The position numbers and the translations under genes were made by a program. The notes under the pieces were generated by a model. It had not been told where the DNA came from, did not search any database, and was given only the letters and a program-made list of their open reading frames with translations. A stretch of 40,633 nt of DNA from Dimorphilus gyrociliatus. Lineage: Eukaryota > Animalia > Annelida. Where the stretch lies: contig CAJFCJ010000101.1 of the NCBI GenBank assembly GCA_904063045.1, positions 45,838 to 86,470 of the forward strand, given 5' to 3'. Shown one piece after another: positions 345-40,633 of the stretch. Numbering within the stretch: the stretch's first letter is position 1; each line of letters begins with the position of its first letter.

Positions 345-1955
345 TTAGACTGGGCTATAAATATTGGAAGCTTTTTCAAGTAAATCCAATGATGTGATTG
401 AAGCAACCTCAAATTGTTGCCATAAGCTAAATATTTTGCTTTGAATATTCTGATATGCTTTTCTTGCTGTCTACAGATTTTCTTCTCGCTCAGCAGTTTT
501 TTATATAGTTTTATCAGATCTGCTTCTCTTTTCAGTTCATCCAAAAGGGAATAGAAGCCAGAGTTTAGATTGATGATTTTTGTTCAACCTGTGATGCCAG
601 CCCTCAAGGTCATTATTGGTTCTGATAGCCTCACCATATACAGACCACATCTCTGGTTTAAAATATCCATCTATCCATTGAGTTTCAATGTTCTCAAATA
701 AAGGATGTATTTCAAAGGAACATATTTCTTTTATAGCCTGAAAAGTTGGTTGAACTAAATCAGAAGGCAGGAAAGGTAAGGTCATTAACTTCTTCATGAC
801 ATCATATTCTGCTCCTCTTTCCTTGTACATCTTACAAAATCCCAATTCCTGGAAAAAAAACATATGTATTATATCTGCATCTGAAGTGGTTGATTCAATT
901 ACTTGAATCTTTCTATAAACTGCTTGAGTCCAGTGAAAAACACATCCTTTAATGATTGTCTGAGGATAAGTGGAGGATAAAGCTTTCCAAATAGCCTTTT
1001 CAAAGTCCACAACAATTTTTTTAGGGCTATGTCCATTTGTTAAATCTTGCATTGCCTGCTTTGAAAGTTATTAGATCATTAAAGTTGAAATGTAAAGTTT
1101 CTGTACCTTAAAAAGTTTCTTGTAAGCCACCTTTTTCTTGGATCCCATAAAAGCAAATGCCATTGGAACTTGTTTCATCTCACCATTCTTTTTGATGAAT
1201 CCATGAATGGAAAAAAGTTGATAAAATGGGTCTTTTACACATTTAAATGTGCCATCCATAAACCATATTTTACCCTTTGATAATAAGTCAATTTGCTTTA
1301 AAGTTGAAAATATCAGTATTCTATCATTCTCCATTTGAACTGGATTTGTCTACAAATACTTAATCTATTTGTTTGAAAGTGAATTACACGATAATTGGTC
1401 ATATAATCCCTATAAGTAATGTTGAAATGATATTTATCATTTTGTACTGGAAAAATATCTAAAAATTTGAACAGAAACAAGCAAAATAAACTGGATTTTT
1501 GTCCTATTTCTCTTGAAACAAACATTTTGTTCTTTTCCAACAAGTAATACATAAGTAATTAATTATGAAATGAGTACTGTCATTTGAAATTCTTTTTAAA
1601 ACATATTCACCATTTATGTATTCAAAAAATTTTCTTTCTAAAAGTATAATTTGAAATTTCCTAGGTGTCAAAAAAAATTTAGAGCAAATCACTCACTTTT
1701 TAGCTTTGATTGACAAGATTGCATTTCAACATATAAATTGTCAAAATTTTTGGAATTGGCACAAAATTCAGTTAAATTATGTTTAGCACATTTATTAAAT
1801 AACACTGGATAAAATTCCTTTGATTCATCATCATAAACCTCTGCTATAAAAGTAACAGAGTTATCTGATCCTATTTTGAATGCAAATCCATATGCAAATT
1901 GGATGAAAGAATGTAAATGCCAAAATATTTTTACAATTTTTATATTAAAATTCAT
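345..1955 (-). pseudogene. Intron-containing MULE transposase, frameshifted
   Basis: Motifs WFMDGTFK, IVVDFE, GCVFHW and RTNNDLEGWH. GT-AG introns at 1056-1106 (joins LFK|AMQD) and 849-902 (joins KIQ|ELGF). Frameshifts near 1335, 550 and 430. The C-terminus LWQQFE...IYSPV* ends at 345. The 5' limit (1955) is uncertain. Confidence 0.85.
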
Positions 1956-10925: not shown

Positions 10926-11092
10926 TGACGAAAATATGATTATAGGCTGACATTTAATGTACTGTTCAAAAGTAACTTATATAAAAAAATAAATTATTTA
11001 ATGAATTACATAAAAGAGATGCACTAAACTTCAAGGCAATGTAGCTCAAAAACTAATTCTCATTAAATCAAGATGAAGGGACTCATCTTCAC

Positions 11093-11352
11093 AAAGAAGG
11101 GGGAAGTTGTACAACTTTGGTTATATTTTACATGCTTGAACTCTATTATTTTATGCAACATATACATGTACATCTTAAAACCTACGCAAGAAAATGCTAT
11201 AACATTGGCCAAACATAAGTCTGATTAGTCAGCTTGAAGGTTCATCTTTAATTACCAATAAAGGTTTGGCCAAGTTATAATTTAATTAACTTGCCTAGGG
11301 TGTGGCCAAGTTATAATTCAATTAACCTTCCTAAATGTTGAACCTTGTAACA
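11093..11352 (+). mobile_element. Candidate PPT plus 3' (or solo) LTR of about 245 bp
   Basis: Purine tract AAAGAAGGGGGAAG (11093-11106), then TGTACAA (11108) ... TTGTAACA (11352). Internal 36-bp tandem duplication (11267-11332) and AATAAA. No partner LTR in the window. Confidence 0.4.
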
Positions 11353-12935
11353 TCCTGTTACTAAAGATAAATATGAACTACACATTTCGGCAACTGTAAA
11401 GTGATGATTGGATGTCAGAGACAAACCTCAAAGTGTATAAATCCTCATTATTCTCATTTGGCATGCAGCTTCCATCTGGACCCAAGGACCTGGGAAAATC
11501 ATCTGGAAACAACCTCCACTGGAACCATCCATCTACTCCTCAACATTGGAAGACAGTTTGGTAATTTGGCAACCTGCTATTACAAACTATCTACTCTGCT
11601 ATTGAACTCTCATATTGTTACTTGCTTAAGTATTATTATTGCGAATAAACCATTTTAATTTAAACATTTGTTTAAAGGTTCGAGTAGAACCAGTATTGTT
11701 ATAACTTGCAAACGCATAGATTTTGCCAGCAAGAGCAGTACATCATCGTACTGTCATATCTGAAGGTGTTTCATTTCAGAGTATGTTGCACTTATATCAA
11801 TAGAAGAAATGTCAATATTGCAATACTGGCAAATATATGGGCTGTGCTGTTCAGGTTATACTATGTGAGGCTTCTGTTTATCACCAGGTCATTCCACAGT
11901 CTCATCTGGCTGAGTCTCTTATTTTTATTAGATATGGCCATCAATATTTACTTTATCTTCACAATTTGTTTCATGAGATCATTGCTGTATTTCAATATCA
12001 ATATACTGGTGGATGGATGGGGGATTGCAGAGAAGGTCGATGCTATGGGCGATGTGATACCGGGATTGTGAAGGATTGTGAAGGATTGTAATTGTGTTTC
12101 TTTATTTTGTTTGTGGATTTTTTTTATGAAAATTCTCTTCTTTTCATAAGAATCTCTCATGTGAAGAAATTCTTAGAATTTTTGTTCATTTTACATCTTT
12201 TAAATGTTTTACGAAAATTTTATAAGAAGTATAAGCTCAGAGAGTTCTTTAAAAAAATAGTTTTCAATCCTAAAACCTGAATAAACATATTGAAAGATTA
12301 TTAGCAGAGGCACATCATACATAAAGATTTCTGAATCTTTCCATGTCATTGAAAAATTACTGAGGACATTGGGCATTTCAAATAAAATGTGAAGAGAAAA
12401 GTTAGAACTACATCTGATAAGATGGCATCGAATGTGTTGACAGGATTGCAAAAAATGTCTTTTTAAAACCTTGGCTACGTGTTAATTTTGGCTGTTCCAA
12501 TCAAAAGACATGTTGTCATGACACCTCTGACAATTTAAATGGAGAGTAAATAACATTTTACACATTGAATCTGAACAAAAATAATGTCGATCCATGATCG
12601 CCATTTTAAAATATCCTCCTGTGCCAGCAACAATTGCAAAAGTATTTTTTTACAAGCGAAACTTTAAGCAAGGAGAATTACTAAAGATCAAGTGTGCAAA
12701 CAAACTTTACTACGATATTTTTGAATATGTCACTGATGAAAAAGAGGTTGAAAAACATGAAAGATGAGACCAAATTGTGGTAGATGCAGGGTTTTGAGAA
12801 TGAGAATTTATTATTTCCTTGCTATGAGTATCTCATTCTGTGGTACTTTTCTGCCTCTTGAGTCTTTTCTGAGAGGTTCAACAAAAAATATTTTAAATTT
12901 TCAAAATGTGATAAAGAGGCGAAGCCGGCTGGCCA

Positions 12936-16180: not shown

Positions 16181-17296
16181 GTGTCGGAATGTACTTCGAT
16201 GATTGTGGTGAATGATTTAAAATACATTCCAACAAAACAATATAATATCAGGTATGTTATTAAACTGATAGACACAAAATACAATGAAAGGATAAAGAAA
16301 AATGACGATGTTACGGATGAATGTAGAGTAACTCTGTGGAAAGATGTGTTTCTCAGATATGATTCTGGAATATCTGATAAAAAAAGAATAATGGTTTTCT
16401 TTTCTGAAAATACAAAAAATTTTATGAAAGAGGTATCCGTCATATTGATTGATGGCACTTTTAAAATTTCACCAACAAGTTCACGACAAGTTCTAACAAT
16501 TCATGGTCTGCATATCGATAAGTATTATCCTTTAATTTACTTGATTCTTCCAGATAAATCGACAACAACTTATAAAAAGGCTTTTAAAATAATCACAGAA
16601 AAAATTCAATTTGATCCAGAGTATATAATAACAGATTTCGAATTGGGTCTGATAAATTCTTTGAGAGAGACCTTCACTCATGCAAAATTTGGTGGCTGCT
16701 TGTTTCATTTCACACCAGCAATATGGAAAAAAATACAAAAATTAGGAATTGCCTCAGTTTATATGAAAGACATTGGAGTTCAAAAGATCGTTCACAAAAT
16801 ATTAGCTCTTCCTTTTTATCCTGTAGATGATATTGAGAGGAGAGTATCAGAAATCAAAAGTGAAGTCATCTATCGTGAAAGAGAAAACACATTTGATGCT
16901 GTTTTTGAATATTTAGAAAATGTTTATTTAGGAAGATATGAATATGGTATTTATGATTCTCCAACATATCTTATAGATTTCTGGAATGTATATGATTGTG
17001 TATTGTCTGATATACCACATACAACAAACATACTTGAAGCATGGCACAGAGAAATGAATGAACAAATTGGGGTAGTGCACCCAAATATTGCTCATTTAGT
17101 GAAGTTTTTTAAACAAGAGGAAGAAAAAACATATGTTGGTATTAATCAGGCATTTCAAGGTGTGTTAAATACTCAGCAAAGTAAAGATTTCAAAAAAGAA
17201 TATTTTCTAAAGCAAATATTAAAGAAAAAAGAGAAATTTGAAGACAATTCATTTTTTAAAGCATTGGATTCTGTTTATGGTTGGAAGCTAGAATAG
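16181..17296 (+). CDS. MULE/Mutator transposase with intact DDE core
   Basis: FLRYDSG..RIMVF, LIDGTFK, YIITDFE, GGCLFHF, TTNILEAWH. The frame is stop-free from 15986 and the first ATG is at 16199. The true start and the TIRs were not identified. Confidence 0.9.
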   Translation: MSECTSMIVVNDLKYIPTKQYNIRYVIKLIDTKYNERIKKNDDVTDECRVTLWKDVFLRYDSGISDKKRIMVFFSENTKNFMKEVSVILIDGTFKISPTSSRQVLTIHGLHIDKYYPLIYLILPDKSTTTYKKAFKIITEKIQFDPEYIITDFELGLINSLRETFTHAKFGGCLFHFTPAIWKKIQKLGIASVYMKDIGVQKIVHKILALPFYPVDDIERRVSEIKSEVIYRERENTFDAVFEYLENVYLGRYEYGIYDSPTYLIDFWNVYDCVLSDIPHTTNILEAWHREMNEQIGVVHPNIAHLVKFFKQEEEKTYVGINQAFQGVLNTQQSKDFKKEYFLKQILKKKEKFEDNSFFKALDSVYGWKLE

Positions 17297-21310: not shown

Positions 21311-24300
21311 TGGCGTCGGCTGTAAAAATAATGCCACACTTTTCAGAAGAAGATACAAAGGACTGACCGTCTGGCTCAGAGACAGTGCTCTTTTTGCAGG
21401 TACAGCCATGATGTCGGATGATACAACCTTCCACTCAATGATACTGGCTTTAGACAAAAAGCATGCTCCAAGGCATCACAAGCAACGCAGGAAAAGTCAC
21501 AACTCAAGAATCATTCATACAACTAATAAAAGAATGATTCAGCAATCAATGTGCAAATAATATTACACTTACACTGTTTCTCAGCACTAGCCAAGCAGCC
21601 AGCTACGATGATTTCACAAATTATTAAAGATGCAATGCTTCTATACGAAAGAAACCTTTTACAAAATATGCCACTTATATAAATGGTGATAGTAAAATCA
21701 CCAACAGAACTCAAAGCATACTTACTAGAAAAAAAATTCAGAATACTGGCACGATTTTGTGAGCACGGCGGAAGAATCTGCTTGGATAGCATTTACAGAA
21801 AAGTTGCAAATCAATTCAGTAAACTACAATAATTGAAATCGTAACGAGAGAAGGACAAGACAGGTCAACCATTTCAAAACAGTGAGAGAGCATACATCAC
21901 AAAAACCATTCAAAAATTGTGAATTTGATGGCAAATGCGGGCACATAACAGACGATTGCTAATCCTCAAAGAGGCATCTAATATTCTAAAAAAGAAAGGA
22001 AACAGCACAGTGAACGTGATTGATGATGACCCAATCAATAAAAATTCCTTCATTTATTCGAATTCTCTTCAATCAAGTGACAAGAATCCATTTTTTTGAA
22101 AATCAATTGTGGTGGAAATCTTCACATATGATTACTTGATACAGGTGTTGACGCTTCAATAATTCATGAAACAAATCTGCCACAGGGTGTCAAAATCTTT
22201 CCTTATCATGCAAATGTTCGATCAGCATCAGGAGAGCCCTTGATGATCATAGGACAAGCAATAGACATCCCACTGTATATAGGCAGTAATAATTTAGTTT
22301 CAAGTCCACTGGTGACAAATCTCAACCCAGAATATACAATAATTGAAACACTAGTTATTAAAGAAAAGCCAAACTTGATCTTAACCATTCTAAAACAAAT
22401 AACTAACCAGAATTTGCTTCCCAATTAGGGCAAAAGCGTCTACTCAATAACCACAATAGAAAAGTTCGATAAGCTTTTTAACACGAGATTGACGAGACAA
22501 CACTGTGTACAGTAGCAGAGCACGCAATAGAAACAGGAAATTCGAAACCAATCACTGTTCGAAATCACCAAGTCCCAGTCCAATGGGCCGACAAACTAGA
22601 CGAGATGATCCAAAAAATGCTTGCAAATAAGATCATTAGAGGATAAAACAGCCAATGGTGCTCTAGAATTGTTCCAATACCTAATAAGGATGGGTCTGTT
22701 CGACAGTGTATAGACTTTAGACCTTTAAACAGGGTCACAATAAAAGATCAATATCCCATACCAAGGATTTACGACATAATACAAACACTCGCTAATGCTA
22801 GCTATTTTCAAATACTCGATGCAACCAGCAGCTACTTTCAAATTCCACTAACCGAGGATGGCAACCCAAAAACCGCCTTCAGTTGGAAAAACAACTTATT
22901 CAGATTTAACAGAATGCCGTTTGGACTATCCAATGCTCCAACAACCTTTCAAAGAATAATGGATAAAATTCTTAAATTGGAAATGAGTGACTTTATTAAG
23001 AACAAATGTAATTTTTTTAAAACAGAGATCAAAATTTTTGAGCAATTTATCAGCAAAGGAATTGTCAAACCAGATCCAAAGAAAATAGAAGCAATATTAA
23101 AGTGTGTCGAGCCACATACAATTAAAGAACTCAGGTTTTTTTGTGGCCTTGCAAACCAAATCCGAGATTTTGCTCCTGCCTTTGCTCAAATGGTCGCACC
23201 ACTGAACACATTATTGAAAGGTAGAACTAAACGCAGTGTTGAAAAAGTAAATTGGTGTTCACAAGCATCAGCCTCCTTCAAAAAAACAAAAGAAACGATT
23301 GCAAAAGTCACACAAAGAGCACAGCCTGACCTGTCACTCCCGTTCTTTCTAACAACAGACGCATCAAATCAGTAATTGGTGCGATTTTGTCACAAGAAAA
23401 GAATGGCAAGTGTAGAATGATTCATACTTTCAGAAAAACACTGGATCAGACGCAAATAAACTATTCAGTCACCAACAAAGAGCTTCTCAGGCTTGTCTGA
23501 GGAATTGAACACTTTAAATACAATTTATTAGGAAAAAAATTTATTCTAGAAACAGATCACCATGCTCTGAAATATTTACAACTAGTGACTTAGCCTAACA
23601 GCCGGCTAATGCGTTGGTCTCTATTCCTGCAAGATTACGATTTTGAAATAAGGTATTGTTGTATCCGCCTGATATTTTACAGGTGGATAAGTACTCCTCG
23701 ACGAGAGAAGAATTTCTGGTTGAAGAAAATGTTTTTTGCATGGGGTAAAGAATTTATTCAAATTTATATTTTAGAATTTTGTCTAGACATTTTCTGAAAA
23801 AGGTAAAACAAAACAGTTGTGTTCGGCTGCTAGAATGATGCAACAGTATATTCCAGGAGAATCTAGAGCAGCTGATTTTTTAGCTGATATACAATTGCAA
23901 ATGTCAAAAGTTCGGATGAATTATGTAATAATGAAAAAGAAGATATCCTGAATGAATATCACATCGGAAGTGGTCATGGTTCTAAAGGCACGATGCACTT
24001 TCTGCTTAAAGGTAATTACAAATGGAGTTATATGGCCAAGGACATTGAAGATTTCATTAGAAAGTGTCAAATCTGTGTTTAAAGTGGTACTCTGGAACAA
24101 AACACAAAATTTTACCCAATAGTATCTACACGTCCTAATGAAGTCTGGGTCGACCTGATCGGGCCGTTAGAAAGAACCAACAACACTCATCGCTATATCC
24201 TAGTGGCAATTGATCACTATACAAAATGAACAGAACTGCAGCAATTCCTGACAAAACGGTGGCCACTGTTGCCAAAAAGATCAAAAGTCTAATAATCGAC

Positions 24301-24390: not shown

Positions 24391-25907
24391 CAGTCAACCC
24401 TCTAAATTTTTCCACATCCAAAAATTATCATATTACAAGCTCCCCCCCAAACAAAAAAAAAGAAAGACACTAATATTTATTAAAACAGATTGAAATTTGT
24501 ATCATCAAAAATTTCTTCACAATTTGGGTTACTTGAATCAAAATGGCCATTGAGACTGTCATTTACTGTATTCAAAGCCGAGGGAACATTAAAATCAACC
24601 AGTCCAAGGGATTGCATATGCAATTCAAGATCTTTTAATAGAGACAGCCCATGATCATCTATGCTGTGATTGAAAGCTTTCTCAAGAGAAAAATCAAGAC
24701 AGGTACTTTCTGAATGAGAAAGAGGGGAATTCTGAACATTCACTAAGCACATTAGAAGTGTTAAATTCTACATCTTTTCCAAAAACATGTTGTTCCAGAA
24801 ATTTTCGTCTGGATATTCTGTATTTGATGGATGGTTGGATTGTAAAGGTTGGTTAACATTACTGACTGTTTCCAATAAATGATTATCTTGTGTATGGTTT
24901 GTTTCTTCTTCCTCTTTTATAAATCCTGTTTTTACCCAAGAATTCCAAATAGTTGTAGGTGTTACTTCGGAACAAGCATTTGAACACATTTCAATCGTGT
25001 CCTTTATGTTCAAAGCTTTGTAGTTGGCTTCTGCAGAAGCATAAACTGATTGTCTCAATAGAACTTTTTGTGTTGGTAAAGTTAGAAAGGCATTGTGGAT
25101 TCTTATATTTATGGATAAAGCCAAGTTTTTTCTTTTCAGAACCATCAATATTGGTGCATAAAAGAAGTGATACCCAATCTTTTGGGACTTTGAATCCTTT
25201 TCTCTTATTTTTAGCATTTGTAGTCAGAGCACATGCTTTAAAGAACAACCCAGTCTCATCACAATTGAAAATATCATTTTTGTGGTAGGAATGTAATTTA
25301 TCTTGAAAATTTGCTAAAAACTCTGAGTAATCTGGTGTAATAACAGCTAATGAATCACCAGAAAGTCTTCTCGATCTAATACATTCTCTGGTTTTAAATC
25401 TATACATCCAACCATTAGATGCTGTGAAGCCTGAGATTTTTAGATCTTCAGCTATCTCCAATGCTTGTAATCTTAGGTCATGTTCTGTATAGTTATATCC
25501 TTGGTCCTCGAGATCATCGCACCAACAAGTCAATCTCTCATTAATTGGACCGAATTTCATGGTTGTGTTCATGCTTTTGTAATTCAAAGGCAGGTTTTCT
25601 CTCAAATCTAAAAATTTTTGCTTATGTTTTTTGATATATTCTATAGCTTTTCGAGAAATATTTTTATTAAGAATTTCATTGAAGTGTTTAGCAACTGACG
25701 TATGATTTGCATCGGGGTTTTCATCAATATACTTTATGATATCAAGTCGCTCTTTGAGTGTTAAAAGAGTATTTGCTCGCTCGACCATTATAGGTTAATT
25801 TTTCTAAGAGCAAAAAAATTATTAAAAACCCTTAAAATGCTTCATAAAAATGGAAAAATGGAGGGGTGGAAAACACAAGAGGTAGGAAAAACAGAGAGGG
25901 CCAACTG
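24391..25907 (-). mobile_element. pogo/Tigger (Tc1/mariner) element inserted at TA in the Gypsy integrase
   Basis: TIRs CAGTCAACCCTCTAAATTTTTCC / (rc) CAGTTGGCCCTCTCTGTTTTTCC. TA on both sides (24389-90, 25908-09). The integrase reading FNI|NAKFSSPDHQET rejoins across it. Confidence 0.9.
24768..25788 (-). pseudogene. pogo/CENP-B-like transposase with internal deletion of most of the DDE_1 core
   Basis: LTLKERLDII HTH, ASNGWMYRFK, IFNCDETGLF, LLLCTNIDGSEK, KNPQC; then an abrupt jump to the C-terminal LNIKDTIEMC..VTPTTIWNSWVKTG. Confidence 0.85.
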
Positions 25908-34230: not shown

Positions 34231-34866
34231 AAACAAATCGGTGGATGATATCCATTTCTGTGCCCAATCTGCACAGAATTTCCAATTCTTTTATATTCTT
34301 TGACAAATTTGAATTTCTTGAATGTCCTGGTGTCCACAATCTTGATCCTTGACTGTTGAAACATTTTCCAAAGTTAGCATGAATAGAAACTTATGAATTA
34401 TGTCATTCATTACATGATTCATATGATACATTCTTTACAACATTTATTACTTACTTGTATCACAAACTTATTAAATCATTTCATTTAAATTTTATTTGGG
34501 ATATTTTCTGGTTTTTTCTCTCACATGTTCTAGTTAACAGATAGGCCTGTAAAAAAAGTATTGACAAAAATTTTTTCATGAAATAGTAATGGCTTTTAAT
34601 AATCCAGATTGTGAGGCACCAAGGGACAGAGATATAAAAGTGTATCCTAAAGGAAGCAATTTTGTAAGAATATAGATTTGCACATAACAATAAAACAGTA
34701 AAATGTAAAAAAATTACCACTCCATTATTTTAAAGTTAAAAGCATTTATTTTTTTCCCTTATCAAAATTTTATATGAAATTAAACAAATTTCTTATTCAG
34801 TTTTTACTGACTAACTTTGACAAATGTTTCAAAAACAAAAACTAAATTATTTGAAAACATTATAGT

Positions 34867-35205
34867 TTAATCAATTGACAAAAGATAACTAATTGGTAGC
34901 TTATCTACATGATTTTCAAGCAAAATTGATTTTAAACTTAAAACAGCATAAATATTTAAGATAGTCTTTAAAATGTTATCTCTTACAGTTGAAGAGAATT
35001 GCAGATGTTCTTGTTCATCCAAATCATCAATTATTTCATTTAGGATGTCCCTGATGGAACTTAGGGAGTAGCAGTATTGGTGTATAAATTCATCATAAAT
35101 TTCAGTAATCATAAGCTTGTGAATATCATAGTAGTCTATTAATTGAGGTAATAAAGAATTTACCTCCTGTATTAAGTCAGTGATAACTGATTCAAAAGAA
35201 GACAT
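34867..35205 (-). CDS. 112-aa acidic, helical-looking orphan protein (paralog A)
   Basis: Intact ORF with an acceptor (ttttccacag) directly before the ATG and a 51-nt leader intron at 35206-35256. About 74% identical to paralog B by manual alignment. Confidence 0.8.
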   Translation of the reverse strand: MSSFESVITDLIQEVNSLLPQLIDYYDIHKLMITEIYDEFIHQYCYSLSSIRDILNEIIDDLDEQEHLQFSSTVRDNILKTILNIYAVLSLKSILLENHVDKLPISYLLSID

Positions 35206-35733
35206 CTGTGGAAAAAATATAATTTATAATATCATTTCAGTCAGATTAATTATTACTTAACTATAACTGTGTGTTTCACTTGTTAATGTGATCCTATCAG
35301 TCCAAAATTTCCACTTGATATAAAGTCAGTTTAAGAGTGTATTGCACTTTTATACATAATAAATTTTTTTCTAAACAGAATAACTATTAAAGTAAAATTT
35401 ATAAAAGTTTATAAGTTTAGTTTGAATTTTTCACAATTAAAAATCATTTAACTTATAAATAACTCTATAATAATCTAAATTTTCCCACAACAAATAATAT
35501 TCACTAAATTTCAGCAAAAAATTATCAAGAAATGTTGCTAACAACAAAGCAGATTGTACTCTTGATATAAAAAGGATATTTATTATGTTTTTATTATTTT
35601 AACTGTCAAAATGTCTATTTTTTTTCCTGATCAATATATTTTAGGAAACTTTACATATTCTAATTTCAATTTTTACTTGGGAAGTTTTTAGCATATATTT
35701 TCAAAAAACAAAAACTAAAATATTTGTAAACAT

Positions 35734-36075
35734 TTAAGCTTCATCAATTGTAAAAAAGTAATCAACTGGCAACTTGTCTACTTGATTTGCAAGCAAAATT
35801 GACTTTAAACCTAAAACTGCATTAATGTTCAGAATAGTCTTTAGCATGTTATCCTTGATAGTTGTTGAAAATTGCAGTTGTTCTTCTTCCAATTCATCAA
35901 TTATTACACTTAAGATGTCCCTGATTGAACTTAGAAAGAAGCAATATTGATGGATAAATTCATCATAAATCTCAGTAATCATGAGCTTGTGAATGTCATA
36001 ATATTCTATCAATTCAGGCAATAAATGATTTACTTCTTGTATTAAATTAGTGATAGCTGATTGTAAAGAAGGCAT
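35734..36075 (-). CDS. 113-aa acidic, helical-looking orphan protein (paralog B)
   Basis: Intact ORF with the same 51-nt leader intron (36076-36126). Tandem unit is about 870 bp. Confidence 0.8.
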   Translation of the reverse strand: MPSLQSAITNLIQEVNHLLPELIEYYDIHKLMITEIYDEFIHQYCFFLSSIRDILSVIIDELEEEQLQFSTTIKDNMLKTILNINAVLGLKSILLANQVDKLPVDYFFTIDEA

Positions 36076-36499
36076 CTGTTGAAAAAATATTGTTAATAAA
36101 ATTACATCAGCAACTTTAATTATTACTTAACTGTAATGATGTTATTCACTTCTCTCAGTGATCCTAAGAGTCCAAAATCTCAATTGAATATAAAGTCTAT
36201 GGAAGAATACATTTTACTTTATATAAAATGAATTATTTTTCTTTCTAACTGATAGATATTTTTATAAAATAAAAGTAAAGTTTTCAAGCTTGGTTTAAAT
36301 TTTTCACTAAATGTTAAAATTGAAAATATTTAACTGATTAAAAAAGAACAAAATATATTGCTTTGTAAACTCTTAAACTAATTTTAACATATTCAAGATT
36401 TTCAACAAAAAAGAAATAAAATTCATGTGGGAAAGTGTATATGGAATAATCTCATTATACCAGATTACATTACCTAACATATCAGTGTTATATAATTCC

Positions 36500-36669
36500 T
36501 ATAAAACATTTAAATTCAATCTAAAATTTTCATTTTGTGTTTGTAAGTTGATTATCTCACATCAATACATTTCACCATTTTAAAGAAGCAATTGAAAATT
36601 AAAGGATATCTGTGGTATCTATTTATTGTTACTCTTATATATAAATTATTGAATATTTTAATATTGTAG
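36500..36669 (+). promoter_or_regulatory. TATA box, initiator and 5'-leader intron of the PLE ORF
   Basis: TATAAAA at 36500-36506; TCATTT at 36530-36535 (A at 36532, 32 nt from the TATA start); GTAAGT donor at 36543; TTGTAG acceptor ending 36669, 5 nt before the ATG. Confidence 0.55.
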
Positions 36670-36674
36670 TCAAT

Positions 36675-39600
36675 ATGAACATAAACCAGCAAGCTTACTT
36701 TTCAAAAGTAAGACCTTGGGTATTCCCAAATATGTTTGAAAAGAGGAGCATTGACATATCTCCAGAAAGAAATGATGAATTTGTGAAACAATTGACAAAC
36801 CAACTTAACTTCATTGCAGGATTCATTTCAAAACAAAAGAAATCATATAATGAAATTGTTGATTTAAAGGCTGGTCTCTTTTTTAAAGATCGAGAAATGT
36901 TTACAAAAGAGGCAGAAGAGGAATGCAAAAAGAAATATGCAACATTTCAACAATCTTTACTTGACATCTATCAACAACAATGTGAAATGTTTCTTGATCT
37001 CAACAATTATGATAACCTGTTTATCTTTAAGAGATATGTCAATGATAGACAATTAAAGAAAGCTTTAAGTACTATAAAGAAGGAATACAGCTCTGAGGAA
37101 AATTTCAACAATTTTCAAGAAAAGGTTATAGAATTTTTTTCAGAGGCTAATTCTTCTGCTTCTAATTCTCAAGAAGAAAATAAAATAAATAAAAATATTG
37201 AAGAAACAGAAACAGAGGAAACTGATATACATAAGACTCTTGATAATCTACATTGTCCTGAAATAATTGAAAAGCAAAATGATAAAGAAAATACAACAGA
37301 AATAACTAATAATGACCAGTCAAACCAAGAAGCTACAATAGAAGAGTATGTTGAAATTGAACAAGAAGATCATAGCAATAATGAGGAAATTGTAACAATT
37401 GTACCAATAAAGCATATTTCAAATGTTAGAAAGGAAGAAATACAAAAAATATTACAAGTAACTGATCATTCAAGAAAGTTTACAAACACTCAAGTTCTAA
37501 ATAGAAATTATTACAACAGAGATTTGAAACTTTCTGAAATGTTTTCTAAAATTGGATTCAATTTTAAAACAGAAACTGAAGCAAAAAATCATGCAAAGCT
37601 TCTCAAACCAATAAAAGAAATAAATTCTGACATTATGATTTTGGGAAATAGCTCATTTAGAGATGTCAATATTAAAAATTTATGCTCTTTAAAACTATTA
37701 AATGATTTAGAGAACTACAGTTTAACAGTTGTTAACATCAGTAAATTGTTAGCAATAGATTTGGAAGAAATTGTTGGAAAATGGAACTTGGATTTTAAAA
37801 TTCTTATTCTTCATGTAAACCTAAATGGAGTTGAAGTTGATAGTTTTTTAAATTTAGTAAATGGAAAATTTACTGATTCCAAAAAAATCATATGCTCAAT
37901 TCCTTACACAAATAGAGAACATATACCAAAACCAGAGGAATTTACAAAATTGCAGCAATTTGGTTTGAAAATATTGGATCTGACAAACTTGGAATCTTTG
38001 GGATATAAAGAAAATCCTACAGGAAAGTCAAAAGGGAAGCATTTAACAAAAACTGCACAGGAATTTTGTATCAATTTATGCCTAAAATGCTGTTCTGAAA
38101 GCTTAAATGGAAACCAGGTAGAAAATTTCTCTATTTACAACTTCAATAGCAATAAGTACATTGTTAATTTAAGTAAATATGAAATTCCCAGAGATGTTGA
38201 GGAATTCTTAAATTTAGGTTTAAAGTTTACTTTTCACCAACAAAGTAAAAGCAATTGGCAAAAAATATCTACATTAAATTTAGAGGAATTTTTTAAAAGG
38301 TTGATTTTCGTTGATAAACATATTGAAGGTGAAAGTGAACCTTTAGTAAAAGATTGGAGACCAAAGAAACAAAAATCAGAATTAACACAATCATTTTCAG
38401 ACATTTTTTTAGATGACTGTATAAAAGATTTTAAAATTGATTGTAAAAGGTATTTGAAACAATTTCAATTCAATAACATCAACAACCCTAAAAATAATAA
38501 AAACTTTAAACTCAACAATCAGACACTAATGGAAAGTTTAAAATCATTTTTCTCATTAGACATTATAATAAAATCTTCTGACAAAGGATCATGCCTTGTT
38601 ATTCAGAATAGAGAGGACTACTTAAAAATGTGTCAACATCTAATATCTGATGAAGAACAATATTGCCTTTTAACAAATGGACATGTTTTTACTAAACAAA
38701 ATATTAAATACTATAAAGATCTACTGAAAAAGTATAAATATTGTATTGAAAGTAGTCACTTAAATGCACTATTGGACTCATTAAAAGATTGTAAACCAAG
38801 AAATTTCTATGCTCTTCCAAAAATTCATAAGGAACAACAAACTGATTGGATTGTACCCTTTTCAATTCCAAAAGGCAGACCAGTAATTTCATGTTTAAAT
38901 AGTGAAACTTATGAAATATCAAGATTTATTCACCATCTACTCTATCCAATAAGTAAACTTCATCCTTCTTTCATTGAAAATAGTACAGATATTTTACACC
39001 ATCTTCAAGATTTAATAATACCAAATGATGCCCTTCTAATTACAATGGATATAAAAAGTATGTTCTCTATAATTGATACACATTCTGGATTAAATGCTAT
39101 TGAATATTTCCTTGAGAAATATTCACCATTTGGAAAAGACAATCAGATATTCAAAGAATTTATAATCAATACTTTGAAATATAGCCTTCACAGAAATCAC
39201 TTTCTATTCAATGGACAATTTTATTTGCAAAAACTTGGTTGTGCAATGGGTCAAAGTTATGCTCCTGCCTATGCAAATATTTGGATGGCTTGGATAGAAG
39301 AAACTATAATAGCCAACTTTCAACCATTTCCTTTTTTATACAAAAGATATTTAGATGACATTTTTATTATTTGGACAGATTCAAAAAAAGAATTTGATAT
39401 ATTCTATGCAAAGATCAACAATATAAAAAAGAATTTAAAATTTAAAGTTCAAATTGAAAAATCTAAAATTTCTTTTTTGGATTTGACATTCTTCAAAGGA
39501 ACAAAATTTCTTCAAACTGGAAAACTTGACTATTCTATACACTTTAAAAATTGTGAAACATTCAATTTATTAAATAGAAATTCTCTACATCCTCCCTACA

Positions 39601-40633
39601 CTTTTAAAGGAATTTTAAAAGCACAATTTCAAAGATTTTACATAAATAGCTCTTCTCCCTTCCTTTACAATTACACTTGTGAACTTGTAAAAAAATCTCT
39701 ACAAAGACAAGGCTATTCCCATAAAGAAATTAAAACAGCAATAAAAAAAGTAAGAAGGACCAACTTAAAAATGACCAAAGTTAATTCTGTAATAATTCCA
39801 AAGGATAACCAAATATTTTCAACAATTCTCAAAGAAAGAATTTTAGATATTTCAGATAAGATTCTTATTGGAGATGGTAACAGAGTTGTTAGAAGAAGAA
39901 ATACAATTGATTTGAATGATCAACAACATTCAGTTCTGTTCATTATTCACTGTAAAGAATGCCAGAAAAATATGATAGCCTATTTACAACCTGATTTTGG
40001 AAAGCACATCACCAATATACTATTAATGAACTTGACAAAGTTAAATAATGATTGTCTTTCAGAAAATTTACTTAATCATGATCATCTCTACAAAAATGTT
40101 AGAAAAAATATTCTACTCTTTCCATTGGAACAAATCAGAGATACTTCAATTTTATTAAATCATATTCAACAATTAGTCTACAAGGAGAATATAAAGAATA
40201 TATTTTATCATCCTTTTGGACTTGCAAAATTTACTGTAAATCCTCCATTTAGAAAAATTCCTCTAATATTACCTTACAAAAAAAATCTTTCTCCTTTAAT
40301 AAGTAAGATAAAAAAGAGATACCAAAAACTTCAAATGGAAAAACAAAAATTTCAAAAATACAACTTACTATTCTCCTACCAAACTAATAAAAATAATATA
40401 AGACAAAAGATACTTTATAGTAATTTTGATTTTTTGAAAAAACAGCAATGCCATAATATTGTATTTCAGAAACAACCAAATCAAAGTAATCAAGTTGAAA
40501 AACAGCCAGTAACACCTCTACCACCAATAAGGCATAGATCTTTCCTTCAACCAACAAAAAGATCAATACAGGCTACTGATGATATTCTTACCCCTGGACC
40601 ATCTGGAATTCAAGATACAGTAAAAGATACCAC
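36675..40633 (+). CDS. Penelope-like retroelement polyprotein, >=1319 aa, open at the window end: SGNH-like domain, RT/thumb, degenerate GIY-YIG-like module
   Basis: Manual translation finds no stop from ATG 36675 to the end. PLE motifs: IVNLSKY, LGLKF, IKSSDKG, FYALPKIHK, GRPVIS, MDIKSMF, GCAMGQSYAPAYANIWM, RYLDD (YLDD at 39348-39359), FLDL, NSLHP, IPLILPY, YQTNKN. Confidence 0.93.
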   Translation, partial: MNINQQAYFSKVRPWVFPNMFEKRSIDISPERNDEFVKQLTNQLNFIAGFISKQKKSYNEIVDLKAGLFFKDREMFTKEAEEECKKKYATFQQSLLDIYQQQCEMFLDLNNYDNLFIFKRYVNDRQLKKALSTIKKEYSSEENFNNFQEKVIEFFSEANSSASNSQEENKINKNIEETETEETDIHKTLDNLHCPEIIEKQNDKENTTEITNNDQSNQEATIEEYVEIEQEDHSNNEEIVTIVPIKHISNVRKEEIQKILQVTDHSRKFTNTQVLNRNYYNRDLKLSEMFSKIGFNFKTETEAKNHAKLLKPIKEINSDIMILGNSSFRDVNIKNLCSLKLLNDLENYSLTVVNISKLLAIDLEEIVGKWNLDFKILILHVNLNGVEVDSFLNLVNGKFTDSKKIICSIPYTNREHIPKPEEFTKLQQFGLKILDLTNLESLGYKENPTGKSKGKHLTKTAQEFCINLCLKCCSESLNGNQVENFSIYNFNSNKYIVNLSKYEIPRDVEEFLNLGLKFTFHQQSKSNWQKISTLNLEEFFKRLIFVDKHIEGESEPLVKDWRPKKQKSELTQSFSDIFLDDCIKDFKIDCKRYLKQFQFNNINNPKNNKNFKLNNQTLMESLKSFFSLDIIIKSSDKGSCLVIQNREDYLKMCQHLISDEEQYCLLTNGHVFTKQNIKYYKDLLKKYKYCIESSHLNALLDSLKDCKPRNFYALPKIHKEQQTDWIVPFSIPKGRPVISCLNSETYEISRFIHHLLYPISKLHPSFIENSTDILHHLQDLIIPNDALLITMDIKSMFSIIDTHSGLNAIEYFLEKYSPFGKDNQIFKEFIINTLKYSLHRNHFLFNGQFYLQKLGCAMGQSYAPAYANIWMAWIEETIIANFQPFPFLYKRYLDDIFIIWTDSKKEFDIFYAKINNIKKNLKFKVQIEKSKISFLDLTFFKGTKFLQTGKLDYSIHFKNCETFNLLNRNSLHPPYTFKGILKAQFQRFYINSSSPFLYNYTCELVKKSLQRQGYSHKEIKTAIKKVRRTNLKMTKVNSVIIPKDNQIFSTILKERILDISDKILIGDGNRVVRRRNTIDLNDQQHSVLFIIHCKECQKNMIAYLQPDFGKHITNILLMNLTKLNNDCLSENLLNHDHLYKNVRKNILLFPLEQIRDTSILLNHIQQLVYKENIKNIFYHPFGLAKFTVNPPFRKIPLILPYKKNLSPLISKIKKRYQKLQMEKQKFQKYNLLFSYQTNKNNIRQKILYSNFDFLKKQQCHNIVFQKQPNQSNQVEKQPVTPLPPIRHRSFLQPTKRSIQATDDILTPGPSGIQDTVKDT

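Follow-up and report, generated by a model that had tools for sequence, protein, structure and literature searches.

A giant open reading frame of Dimorphilus gyrociliatus predicted to fuse an ORF1-like module, a Penelope-like reverse transcriptase and a nuclease-dead GIY-YIG-derived domain

The window analyzed here is a stretch of 40,633 nucleotides from the annelid Dimorphilus gyrociliatus, positions 45838 to 86470 of the contig that we call C101 (C101:45838-86470), and the genome searched for relatives comprises 349 contigs and 77.9 Mb. At the downstream edge of this window, a giant open reading frame (ORF) of at least 1,319 codons occupies positions 36675..40633 of the + strand. As judged by homology, this giant ORF encodes the reverse transcriptase (RT) of a Penelope-like element (PLE), and its single polypeptide is predicted to join an ORF1-like module carrying an esterase-like domain, the PLE RT, a pseudo-nuclease and a C-terminal PLE module. 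We consider it likely that one copy of an old, low-copy PLE lineage in a Terminon-like clade has the giant ORF as its main protein gene, and that this ORF belongs to a nuclease-dead element rather than being a domesticated gene.

A preliminary description of this stretch had reported 1,319 uninterrupted codons with the RT motifs and YLDD intact, hidden from the mechanical list of ORFs. Translation, a Pfam match to the RT and an alignment with relatives bear out the first statement, and the second is likewise correct, because the frame runs off the end of the window and for this reason is absent from the list. The frame begins at the first ATG, ten codons past an in-frame stop, and has no stop before it is ended by an assembly gap. 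Each of the remaining five frames across 36675-40633 contains 71-149 stops. In 500 shuffles at 27% GC, the longest open run averaged 58 codons and reached a maximum of 123, which places the observed frame far beyond chance.

Immediately past the window end, C101:86471-89685 consists of 3,215 N, and the window likewise starts directly after an N run. Thus, windows are cut at assembly gaps, and the end of the ORF is an assembly gap. The contig extension proposed in the preliminary description was carried out but met these 3,215 N and reached no stop or 3′ end, and a search past the gap on C101 found no further part of the giant-ORF element. In the alignment, the related ORFs stop approximately 30-60 codons beyond the break, and therefore the visible protein should be nearly complete. 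Its last portion (40425..40633, +), identified from the translation and the alignment, is a low-complexity tail that enters the gap. The NCBI model of the giant ORF, DgyrCDS14925 (1,212 amino acids), parts from the open frame at residue 1209 and closes with 'TMP' (window 40302-40633 plus the gap), an artificial end that is probably an annotation artefact of the assembly gap. The paper describing the D. gyrociliatus genome assigns 4.87% of the sequence to transposable elements (TEs), and nowhere in its text do "Penelope" or words beginning "telomer" occur (PMC7854359).

The RT portion (residues 496-1000; 38160..39674, +) comprises the N-terminal PLE motifs from IVNLSKY onward, the RT core and the thumb. 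IVNLSKY itself corresponds to residues 496-502 and starts at window position 38160 with approximately 495 residues ahead of it, in agreement with the earlier placement at about 38160 with some 490 preceding residues. When the RT piece is scanned alone, RVT_1 is matched with an E value of 3e-12 (47 bits, above the Pfam gathering score; window 38871-39473); the Pfam scan of the whole giant-ORF protein gives no RT match and no PF01541 match. YLDD (residues 892-895; window 39348-39359) and the other RT core motifs are invariant among the aligned relatives. With its catalytic motifs intact, the RT looks competent. A word search with residues 495-1260 matched 42 proteins. After the query itself and a fused relative, P0002, these are proteins of 725-860 amino acids with RVT_1, PF28514, GIY-YIG (PF01541) and HTH_animal (PF26215). 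The set of RVT_1, GIY-YIG and HTH_animal in these outside relatives corresponds to the domain make-up of PLEs, and the best outside matches are PLE proteins with 30-36% identity. Beyond the thumb, the alignment defines a linker (residues 1001-1075; 39675..39899, +) that does not have the zinc-knuckle Cys motif of ordinary relatives.

PLE RTs had been expected from the preliminary description to carry the usual C-terminal GIY-YIG nuclease. A GIY-YIG-derived domain is indeed found by alignment and hhalign (residues 1076-1195; 39900..40259, +), but it is internal and lacks the catalytic residues. It is followed by a conserved C-terminal PLE module, located by the same methods (residues 1196-1250, IPLILPY...LLFSYQTNKN; 40260..40424, +), and one group of relatives has this module after the nuclease domain as well. 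When the two groups are aligned separately and compared by hhalign, the match extends over 154 columns that include GIY-YIG and the following module (probability 97.8, E 1e-12).

Five of the six GIY-YIG hallmark residues, namely the catalytic Tyr, Tyr, Arg, His, Glu and Asn, are replaced in the giant ORF. Specifically, F1089 stands in place of the GIY Tyr, M1100 in place of the YIG Tyr, the Arg and His are lost, and A1184 takes the place of the Asn; E1152 and a CxxC pair (C1093, C1096) are retained. The same pattern holds in the giant-ORF clade, in which the GIY Tyr is changed to F (to C in P0002; the copy on contig C50 keeps Y), the YIG Tyr to M, and the Asn to A or V, the Arg and His are lost, the Glu and CxxC persist and no upstream zinc knuckle remains. 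Pfam returns no PF01541 match for the giant-ORF protein, either whole or in cut pieces, whereas the relatives do match. The ratio of non-synonymous to synonymous substitution rates (dN/dS) among the sister lineages described below is 0.11-0.19 for the GIY-YIG-derived domain and 0.08-0.17 for the RT, values that are rough given that synonymous sites are near saturation among these lineages, and the ratio is unreliable for the window lineage against its kin because synonymous sites are saturated. The loss of these residues, together with constraint like that on the RT, points to a conserved pseudo-nuclease, and we regard the domain as nuclease-dead by prediction.

The preliminary description had divided the front extension into a helical-looking N-terminus, an acidic linker and an SGNH-like block. 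This division is upheld, with the extension conserved among relatives and the SGNH likeness seen at the level of predicted fold. The N-terminal domain (residues 1-164; 36675..37166, +) is predicted to be helical, and homologous N-termini are present in the sister ORFs and in two metagenomic proteins, P0044 and P0002. Searches of its sequence against Pfam and the PDB gave no match, and its AlphaFold2 (AF2) model is helical with a predicted local distance difference test score (pLDDT) of only 48, too poor for a fold search. Thus, the per-domain searches and structure predictions that had been suggested delivered RVT_1, an SGNH-like fold and GIY-YIG homology, but assigned no fold to the N-terminal domain. 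The acidic low-complexity linker (residues 165-252; 37167..37430, +) contains 27% D+E and 34% N/Q/S/T, and the corresponding linker is much longer and variable in the kin. The middle domain (residues 255-495; 37437..38159, +) begins with a small N-terminal subdomain and continues into an SGNH-like alpha/beta core, which in the AF2 model spans approximately residues 317-479 (37623-38111, +).

The first ~495 residues align over their whole length with the sister ORFs (41-46% identity). Furthermore, P0044 is a stand-alone protein of 472 amino acids that aligns end to end with the front ~490 residues (E 1e-40) and ends exactly where IVNLSKY would start. P0044 and P0002, the latter a fused relative of 1,327 amino acids, share one 8.3-kb contig from a Tara Pacific long-read coral metagenome, and neither is encoded in the D. 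gyrociliatus assembly. Because P0044 is free and the D. gyrociliatus copies are fused, the front extension can be viewed as an ORF1-like unit and the giant ORF as an ORF1-RT fusion. The unusual multi-domain layout noted earlier is therefore genuine and does not correspond to an ordinary catalogued PLE. Also, the presence of P0002 and P0044 in a coral-reef metagenome indicates that the clade reaches beyond D. gyrociliatus.

A profile of the middle domain searched against 1.84 billion proteins recovers six kin only and no hydrolase, and thus the module is rare. Its AF2 model (pLDDT 70; predicted template modeling score, pTM, 0.70) shows five beta-alpha units after the small N-terminal subdomain, in keeping with the three-layer alpha/beta/alpha fold of SGNH/GDSL hydrolases and its five parallel strands. 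Of the 48,161 chains compared in an unbiased VIA structure search, those filling the top 22 rows are without exception SGNH/GDSL hydrolases (Z 5.8-7.6, root-mean-square deviation, rmsd, of ~4 Å, 138-165 residues aligned), including PAF acetylhydrolase, sialic acid esterase, CE3 esterases and an OatA domain. That this list is so uniform, and that the alignments span the entire core, favors a genuine relation to SGNH. The best low-rmsd rows of a Foldseek search are esterases such as TesA (SGNH), but their E values are above 0.01.

Several results speak against this assignment. Foldseek finds no match to the middle-domain model in the PDB at E ≤ 0.001, and sequence searches lend no support to SGNH, given that Pfam (all middle-domain members, E up to 10) and PDB sequence and profile searches are empty. 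The assignment is therefore that of a medium-confidence model with Z below 8, and values in this range may reflect merely a common arrangement. Among the expected residues, the block II Gly is absent (N354), as is the Asp at position -3 relative to the His (K453), and P0002 and the ORF2 paralogues of the sister elements are missing either the Ser or the His. In position, S326, N384 and H456 correspond to SGNH blocks I, III and V, and the fused copies of the alignment show no variation at these residues. The AF2 model places S326 at the junction of beta1 and alpha1, N384 in the loop that follows beta3, and H456 at the beginning of the last helix; the motif of S326 reads GNS, the sister ORF1 copies have xDS here, and both P0043 and P0044 have GDS. 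The dN/dS of the middle domain among kin is 0.11-0.19. We hold with moderate confidence that the predicted fold is SGNH-like, and with Ser, Asn and His kept, the esterase-like domain is possibly active.

Related modules were observed elsewhere. P0043 is a stand-alone esterase-like domain of 226 amino acids with GDSS and KGKH motifs, encoded on contigs L039 (Logan SRR23372229) and L040 (SRR24081689); it is thus present in at least two sequencing runs, and one contig is listed for 10 samples. These occurrences indicate that the module also circulates alone outside D. gyrociliatus. Another middle-domain match lies outside the window at C101:9100-9492 (-), inside a 726-amino-acid open frame. Finally, in P0045 (DgyrCDS14481, 321 amino acids), an F5/8 type C (discoidin-like) domain is joined to a C-terminal stretch that is similar to part of the ORF2/middle-domain family; the gene model could be chimeric, or a fragment could have been captured.

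At the DNA level, the search of the assembly recovers the window lineage as one full copy and one broken fragment. The genomic copy count called for in the preliminary description thus does not reveal many near-identical ordinary copies. The duplicated stretch (35562..39175, +) is 99.64% identical to C121:3035-6649, where the reading frame is shifted at codon 493 and the copy breaks off at the counterpart of window position 39175. C121 was also considered as the other haplotype of C101, a possibility that was rejected because only TE-sized matches are common to both contigs.

At the protein level, about a dozen loci with 41-47% identity form a sister group, with open frames of 1,536-1,707 amino acids on C3, C76, C50 and C51. 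Some members are nearly identical (98.8-99.5% for C76 versus C68), and the copies on C70, C171 and C195 are almost without branch length between them, which indicates that the sister group moved recently. A tree was built from the giant-ORF clade and database PLE-like proteins, without named references (Neptune, Poseidon, Nematis, Athena, Coprina, Hydra, Naiad) or TERT. In this tree, the giant-ORF clade of 11 rows is well supported beside the database proteins (Shimodaira-Hasegawa-like approximate likelihood ratio test, SH-aLRT, 100), and the window ORF and P0002 each form a deep branch of their own next to a 9-row multi-copy group. Judged by its 41-46% amino acid identity to kin, the window lineage is old. 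The proposal of a young active element consequently survives in part: 'young' fits the copy, which has a 99.64% identical fragment elsewhere, but not the lineage.

A second PLE family is present on C162, C254, C41, C46, C257 and C107. Its ORFs of ~790 amino acids are 26-27% identical to the giant ORF, and it has many near-identical copies, some of them in tandem at 5,259- or 4,728-bp spacing (e.g. C162:32191-34101 and 37450-39360). This looks like an ordinary multi-copy PLE family.

Collinear comparison of the sister elements reveals ORF0 (~510 amino acids), the giant ORF1, ORF2 (~300-350 amino acids), which is a paralogue of the middle domain, and a 3′ tail. These elements measure at least ~11 kb and by inference up to ~16 kb. 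Their tails are made up of units of 600-840 bp (mostly 626, 675 or 698 bp) repeated in long tandem arrays, as at C3:5263-12358, C3:36737-48647, C59:123252-129638 and C195:6249-10923, and each unit carries a minimal hammerhead-like motif. Read by eye, this motif is TGACC-CTGATGA-stem-GAA-A-CCATGG-T-A-GGTCA, with a 5-bp helix I and a palindromic loop replacing helix III, a layout that we take to be the PLE-type minimal hammerhead. A pattern search finds the motif 65 times genome-wide, and a reversed control yields 0. Such a tail may have been part of the window copy as well, but the search of the window for the motif found none, and the window stops at the gap before the 3′ end of the element.

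The ends of the sister tails are of telomere type. At 11 places (control 0), the tail end ...TCTAGTTCAA... passes straight into CCCTAA repeats, with loci at C3:9246-9359, 11868-11958 and 12592-12653 and on C51, C53, C59, C70 and others. The start of C3 (3.2 Mb) lies inside one copy, which is followed by tail and CCCTAA tracts, and a second copy is located ~26 kb further in. All copies on C3 share one orientation, with CCCTAA on the element sense strand. Elements added to a G-rich chromosome end would be expected to show this order and orientation, as described for Athena/Terminons (PMC6431247). Because the 3′ end of the window copy is in a gap, its mode of integration is inferred from these sister lineages.

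Two small antisense ORFs are present upstream of the giant ORF. ORF B (113 amino acids; 35737..36075, -) has a 74% identical paralogue at the amino acid level, ORF A (112 amino acids; 34867..35205, -), with a dN/dS of 0.18, and the two sit in a 75% tandem duplicate (34724-35462 versus 35593-36344). Homologues are found antisense and upstream of sister elements on C51 (68058-68369) and C3 (19170-19487), and a further one at C68:142117-142449. By these associations, ORF B is probably an accessory gene of the giant-ORF element, and ORFs A and B are probably part of the full element.

A repeat of 689 bp with identical ends is present in at least 40 copies, most of them 99-100% identical and a few 98%, including window 11054-11743, C121:2346-3035, C68:181163-181851 and C76:159836-160528. 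It is located directly 5′ of three PLE-clade copies and abuts the upstream edge of the C121 copy. This repeat is probably the long terminal repeat (LTR) of a very young LTR retrotransposon, perhaps from Dingle, a family that the genome paper names (PMC7854359). Position 35562, where the C121 copy starts, was at first a candidate for the 5′ end of the element. This candidate was dropped because the C121 flank is the 689-bp repeat and the sequence upstream in the window is the tandem duplicate with a paralogous ORF; the point is probably an insertion site. Elsewhere in the window, broken transposon remains at 537-1052 (-), 16181-17296 (+), 22914-23375 (+) and 24991-25788 (-) give partial matches to MULE transposase, LTR-type RT/RNase H and Tc5/pogo DNA-binding domains. 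The other window ORFs of at least 150 amino acids are short pieces with partial MULE, Tc5/pogo and LTR-RT matches, and the earlier statement that the other TEs of the window are decayed is roughly right.

In weighing whether the giant ORF is the gene of a mobile, Terminon-like element, several observations count against us. With one full and one partial copy, the mobility of the lineage rests on two loci. The 5′ end of the element is undefined, its 3′ end lies inside the gap, and no ORF2, hammerhead or tail is visible for the window lineage. Within the window, there is no ORF0 homologue, and no telomere repeats adjoin the copy. Even for the sister tails, Rfam calls no hammerhead at either the gathering or a relaxed threshold.

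The principal rival is that the locus is a domesticated host gene, a PLE-derived RT that the worm has retained, for example at chromosome ends, and that is no longer mobile. The preliminary description had offered a retained or domesticated RT gene as an alternative. Such a history could explain why a lineage that is single-copy and old has a perfectly open frame of 1,319 codons, and why the locus is annotated as a protein-coding gene; a dead nuclease would moreover preclude integration by cutting. However, a second, decaying copy with 99.64% identity resides in an unrelated, TE-filled contig, and the gene itself is in a TE island beside small accessory ORFs that also accompany the mobile sister elements. 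Furthermore, the closest kin are all multi-copy elements with recent copies, and the P0002/P0044 pair from the reef metagenome looks like an element rather than a conserved orthologue. Domestication is weakened by the decaying second copy, the TE-island setting and the element-like kin, such that we consider it unlikely and find that a mobile element fits better.

Might the giant ORF instead be a dead-end remnant, whose frame is open only through recent copying, in an incomplete element of an immobile lineage? The window has no detectable ORF0 homologue and no defined element ends, there are two copies only, of which one is broken, and the 3 synonymous and 3 non-synonymous changes between them reveal no constraint since their split. 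Nevertheless, all domains are intact despite 54-59% amino acid divergence from kin, which requires long-term selection until the recent past. ORF0 may also not belong to the window lineage, given that the contig of P0002 shows none either. On balance, a remnant of this kind is improbable. An ordinary endonuclease-bearing (EN+) PLE, whose GIY-YIG nuclease works and whose N-terminal extension is a read-through by chance, deserves very little credence, because homology to GIY-YIG and the retention of Glu1152 and CxxC are outweighed by the replacement of five of six hallmark residues throughout the clade, the missing PF01541 match, the purifying selection on the front 490 residues in kin (41-46% identity) and their conservation in P0044, and the length of ordinary relatives (730-860 amino acids).

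If the giant ORF is indeed the gene of a nuclease-dead mobile element, then a plausible scheme for its function can be outlined. Without a working nuclease, the element would not cut its target. Rather, reverse transcription would prime on free 3′-OH ends, either telomeric G-overhangs or breaks, and these ends would pair with a reverse-telomere tail of the element RNA, a mechanism that has been put forward for Athena/Terminons. The dead nuclease domain would then have a structural role or bind DNA ends, the front module would help to assemble an RNA-protein particle in the manner of a retrotransposon ORF1, and the esterase-like domain might act on an ester or membrane target. A more speculative extension is that the host keeps the lineage or clade as a chromosome-end-healing RT, its nuclease lost and the remaining domain end-binding, on a path to a telomerase-like role independent of rotifer Athena; we think this distinctly improbable.

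Three aspects of this system seem to be new relative to the published literature searched: the annelid and reef setting, a conserved dead GIY-YIG domain retained in an RT protein, and an in-frame ORF1-esterase-RT fusion. Terminons and Athena have been treated as a peculiarity of bdelloid rotifers, and here an annelid and a reef organism exhibit the same organization. The elements of the clade appear to be derived from nuclease-bearing PLEs, with the dead nuclease domain still conserved, and a telomere-seeking life would then be a repeated outcome in PLE evolution. The clade would also offer a natural case for the role of a GIY-YIG fold that does not cut and for the role of esterase domains in retroelements.

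The EN+ relatives P0003, P0004, P0005, P0008, P0012, P0014, P0015 and P0022 provide the closest comparison in architecture. Like the giant ORF, they place GIY-YIG between the RT thumb and a C-terminal module, and the regions are homologous. Unlike it, they are 730-790 amino acids in length, retain the zinc knuckle along with every nuclease residue, and have no front module.

Families that are EN- are known to arise inside EN+ PLE clades, such as the Neptune-like MjPLE01 of kuruma shrimp and Chlamys PLE-X (PMC8557442). These cases resemble ours in the secondary loss of nuclease function within a nuclease-bearing group, for which another route to 3′-OH ends is presumed (PMC8557442). PLE-X, as it is described there, has no EN domain, whereas in the giant ORF the domain is kept, apparently inactivated and constrained like the RT, and large accessory modules are present. 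The CR1, L2 and RTEX non-LTR retrotransposons have an esterase-bearing ORF1 (Kapitonov and Jurka, 2003, cited in PMC8557442; PMC5408684). The likeness is an SGNH-type esterase domain in an ORF1-type protein with a helical region ahead of it, which here is predicted only. In contrast to those elements, which belong to another retroelement class, the module in the giant ORF is fused to the RT, has no detectable SGNH sequence similarity, and is missing the Asp and the block II Gly.

The organization as a whole most closely recalls Athena/Terminons (Gladyshev and Arkhipova, 2007, and Arkhipova et al., 2017; as reviewed in PMC6431247 and PMC5408684). These elements are EN-deficient, carry GDSL esterase ORFs, some of which are catalytically dead, and have near the 3′ end a hammerhead, after which come reverse-complement telomere repeats (PMC6431247, PMC5408684). 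Both systems have a PLE-type RT, no working endonuclease, and large multi-ORF elements with GDSL/SGNH esterase-like ORFs; in addition, the sister lineages alone share with them the 3′ hammerhead with reverse-complement telomere repeats, 5′-truncated copies and head-to-tail chains. The systems differ in that the hosts here are an annelid and a reef organism, whereas Athena has been described as rotifer-specific, and in that the RT and the esterase-like module here share one continuous frame and the hammerhead units are strung into long tandem arrays (626-698 bp), unlike in Terminons. Moreover, the RT of the giant ORF has the nearest relatives found among EN+ PLEs, and the protein still contains a dead GIY-YIG domain, whereas the nuclease is absent in Athena, which suggests that nuclease activity was lost inside an EN+ lineage. 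Membership in the Athena RT clade is thus unlikely on these comparisons, and the resemblance between the two systems would be one of organization.

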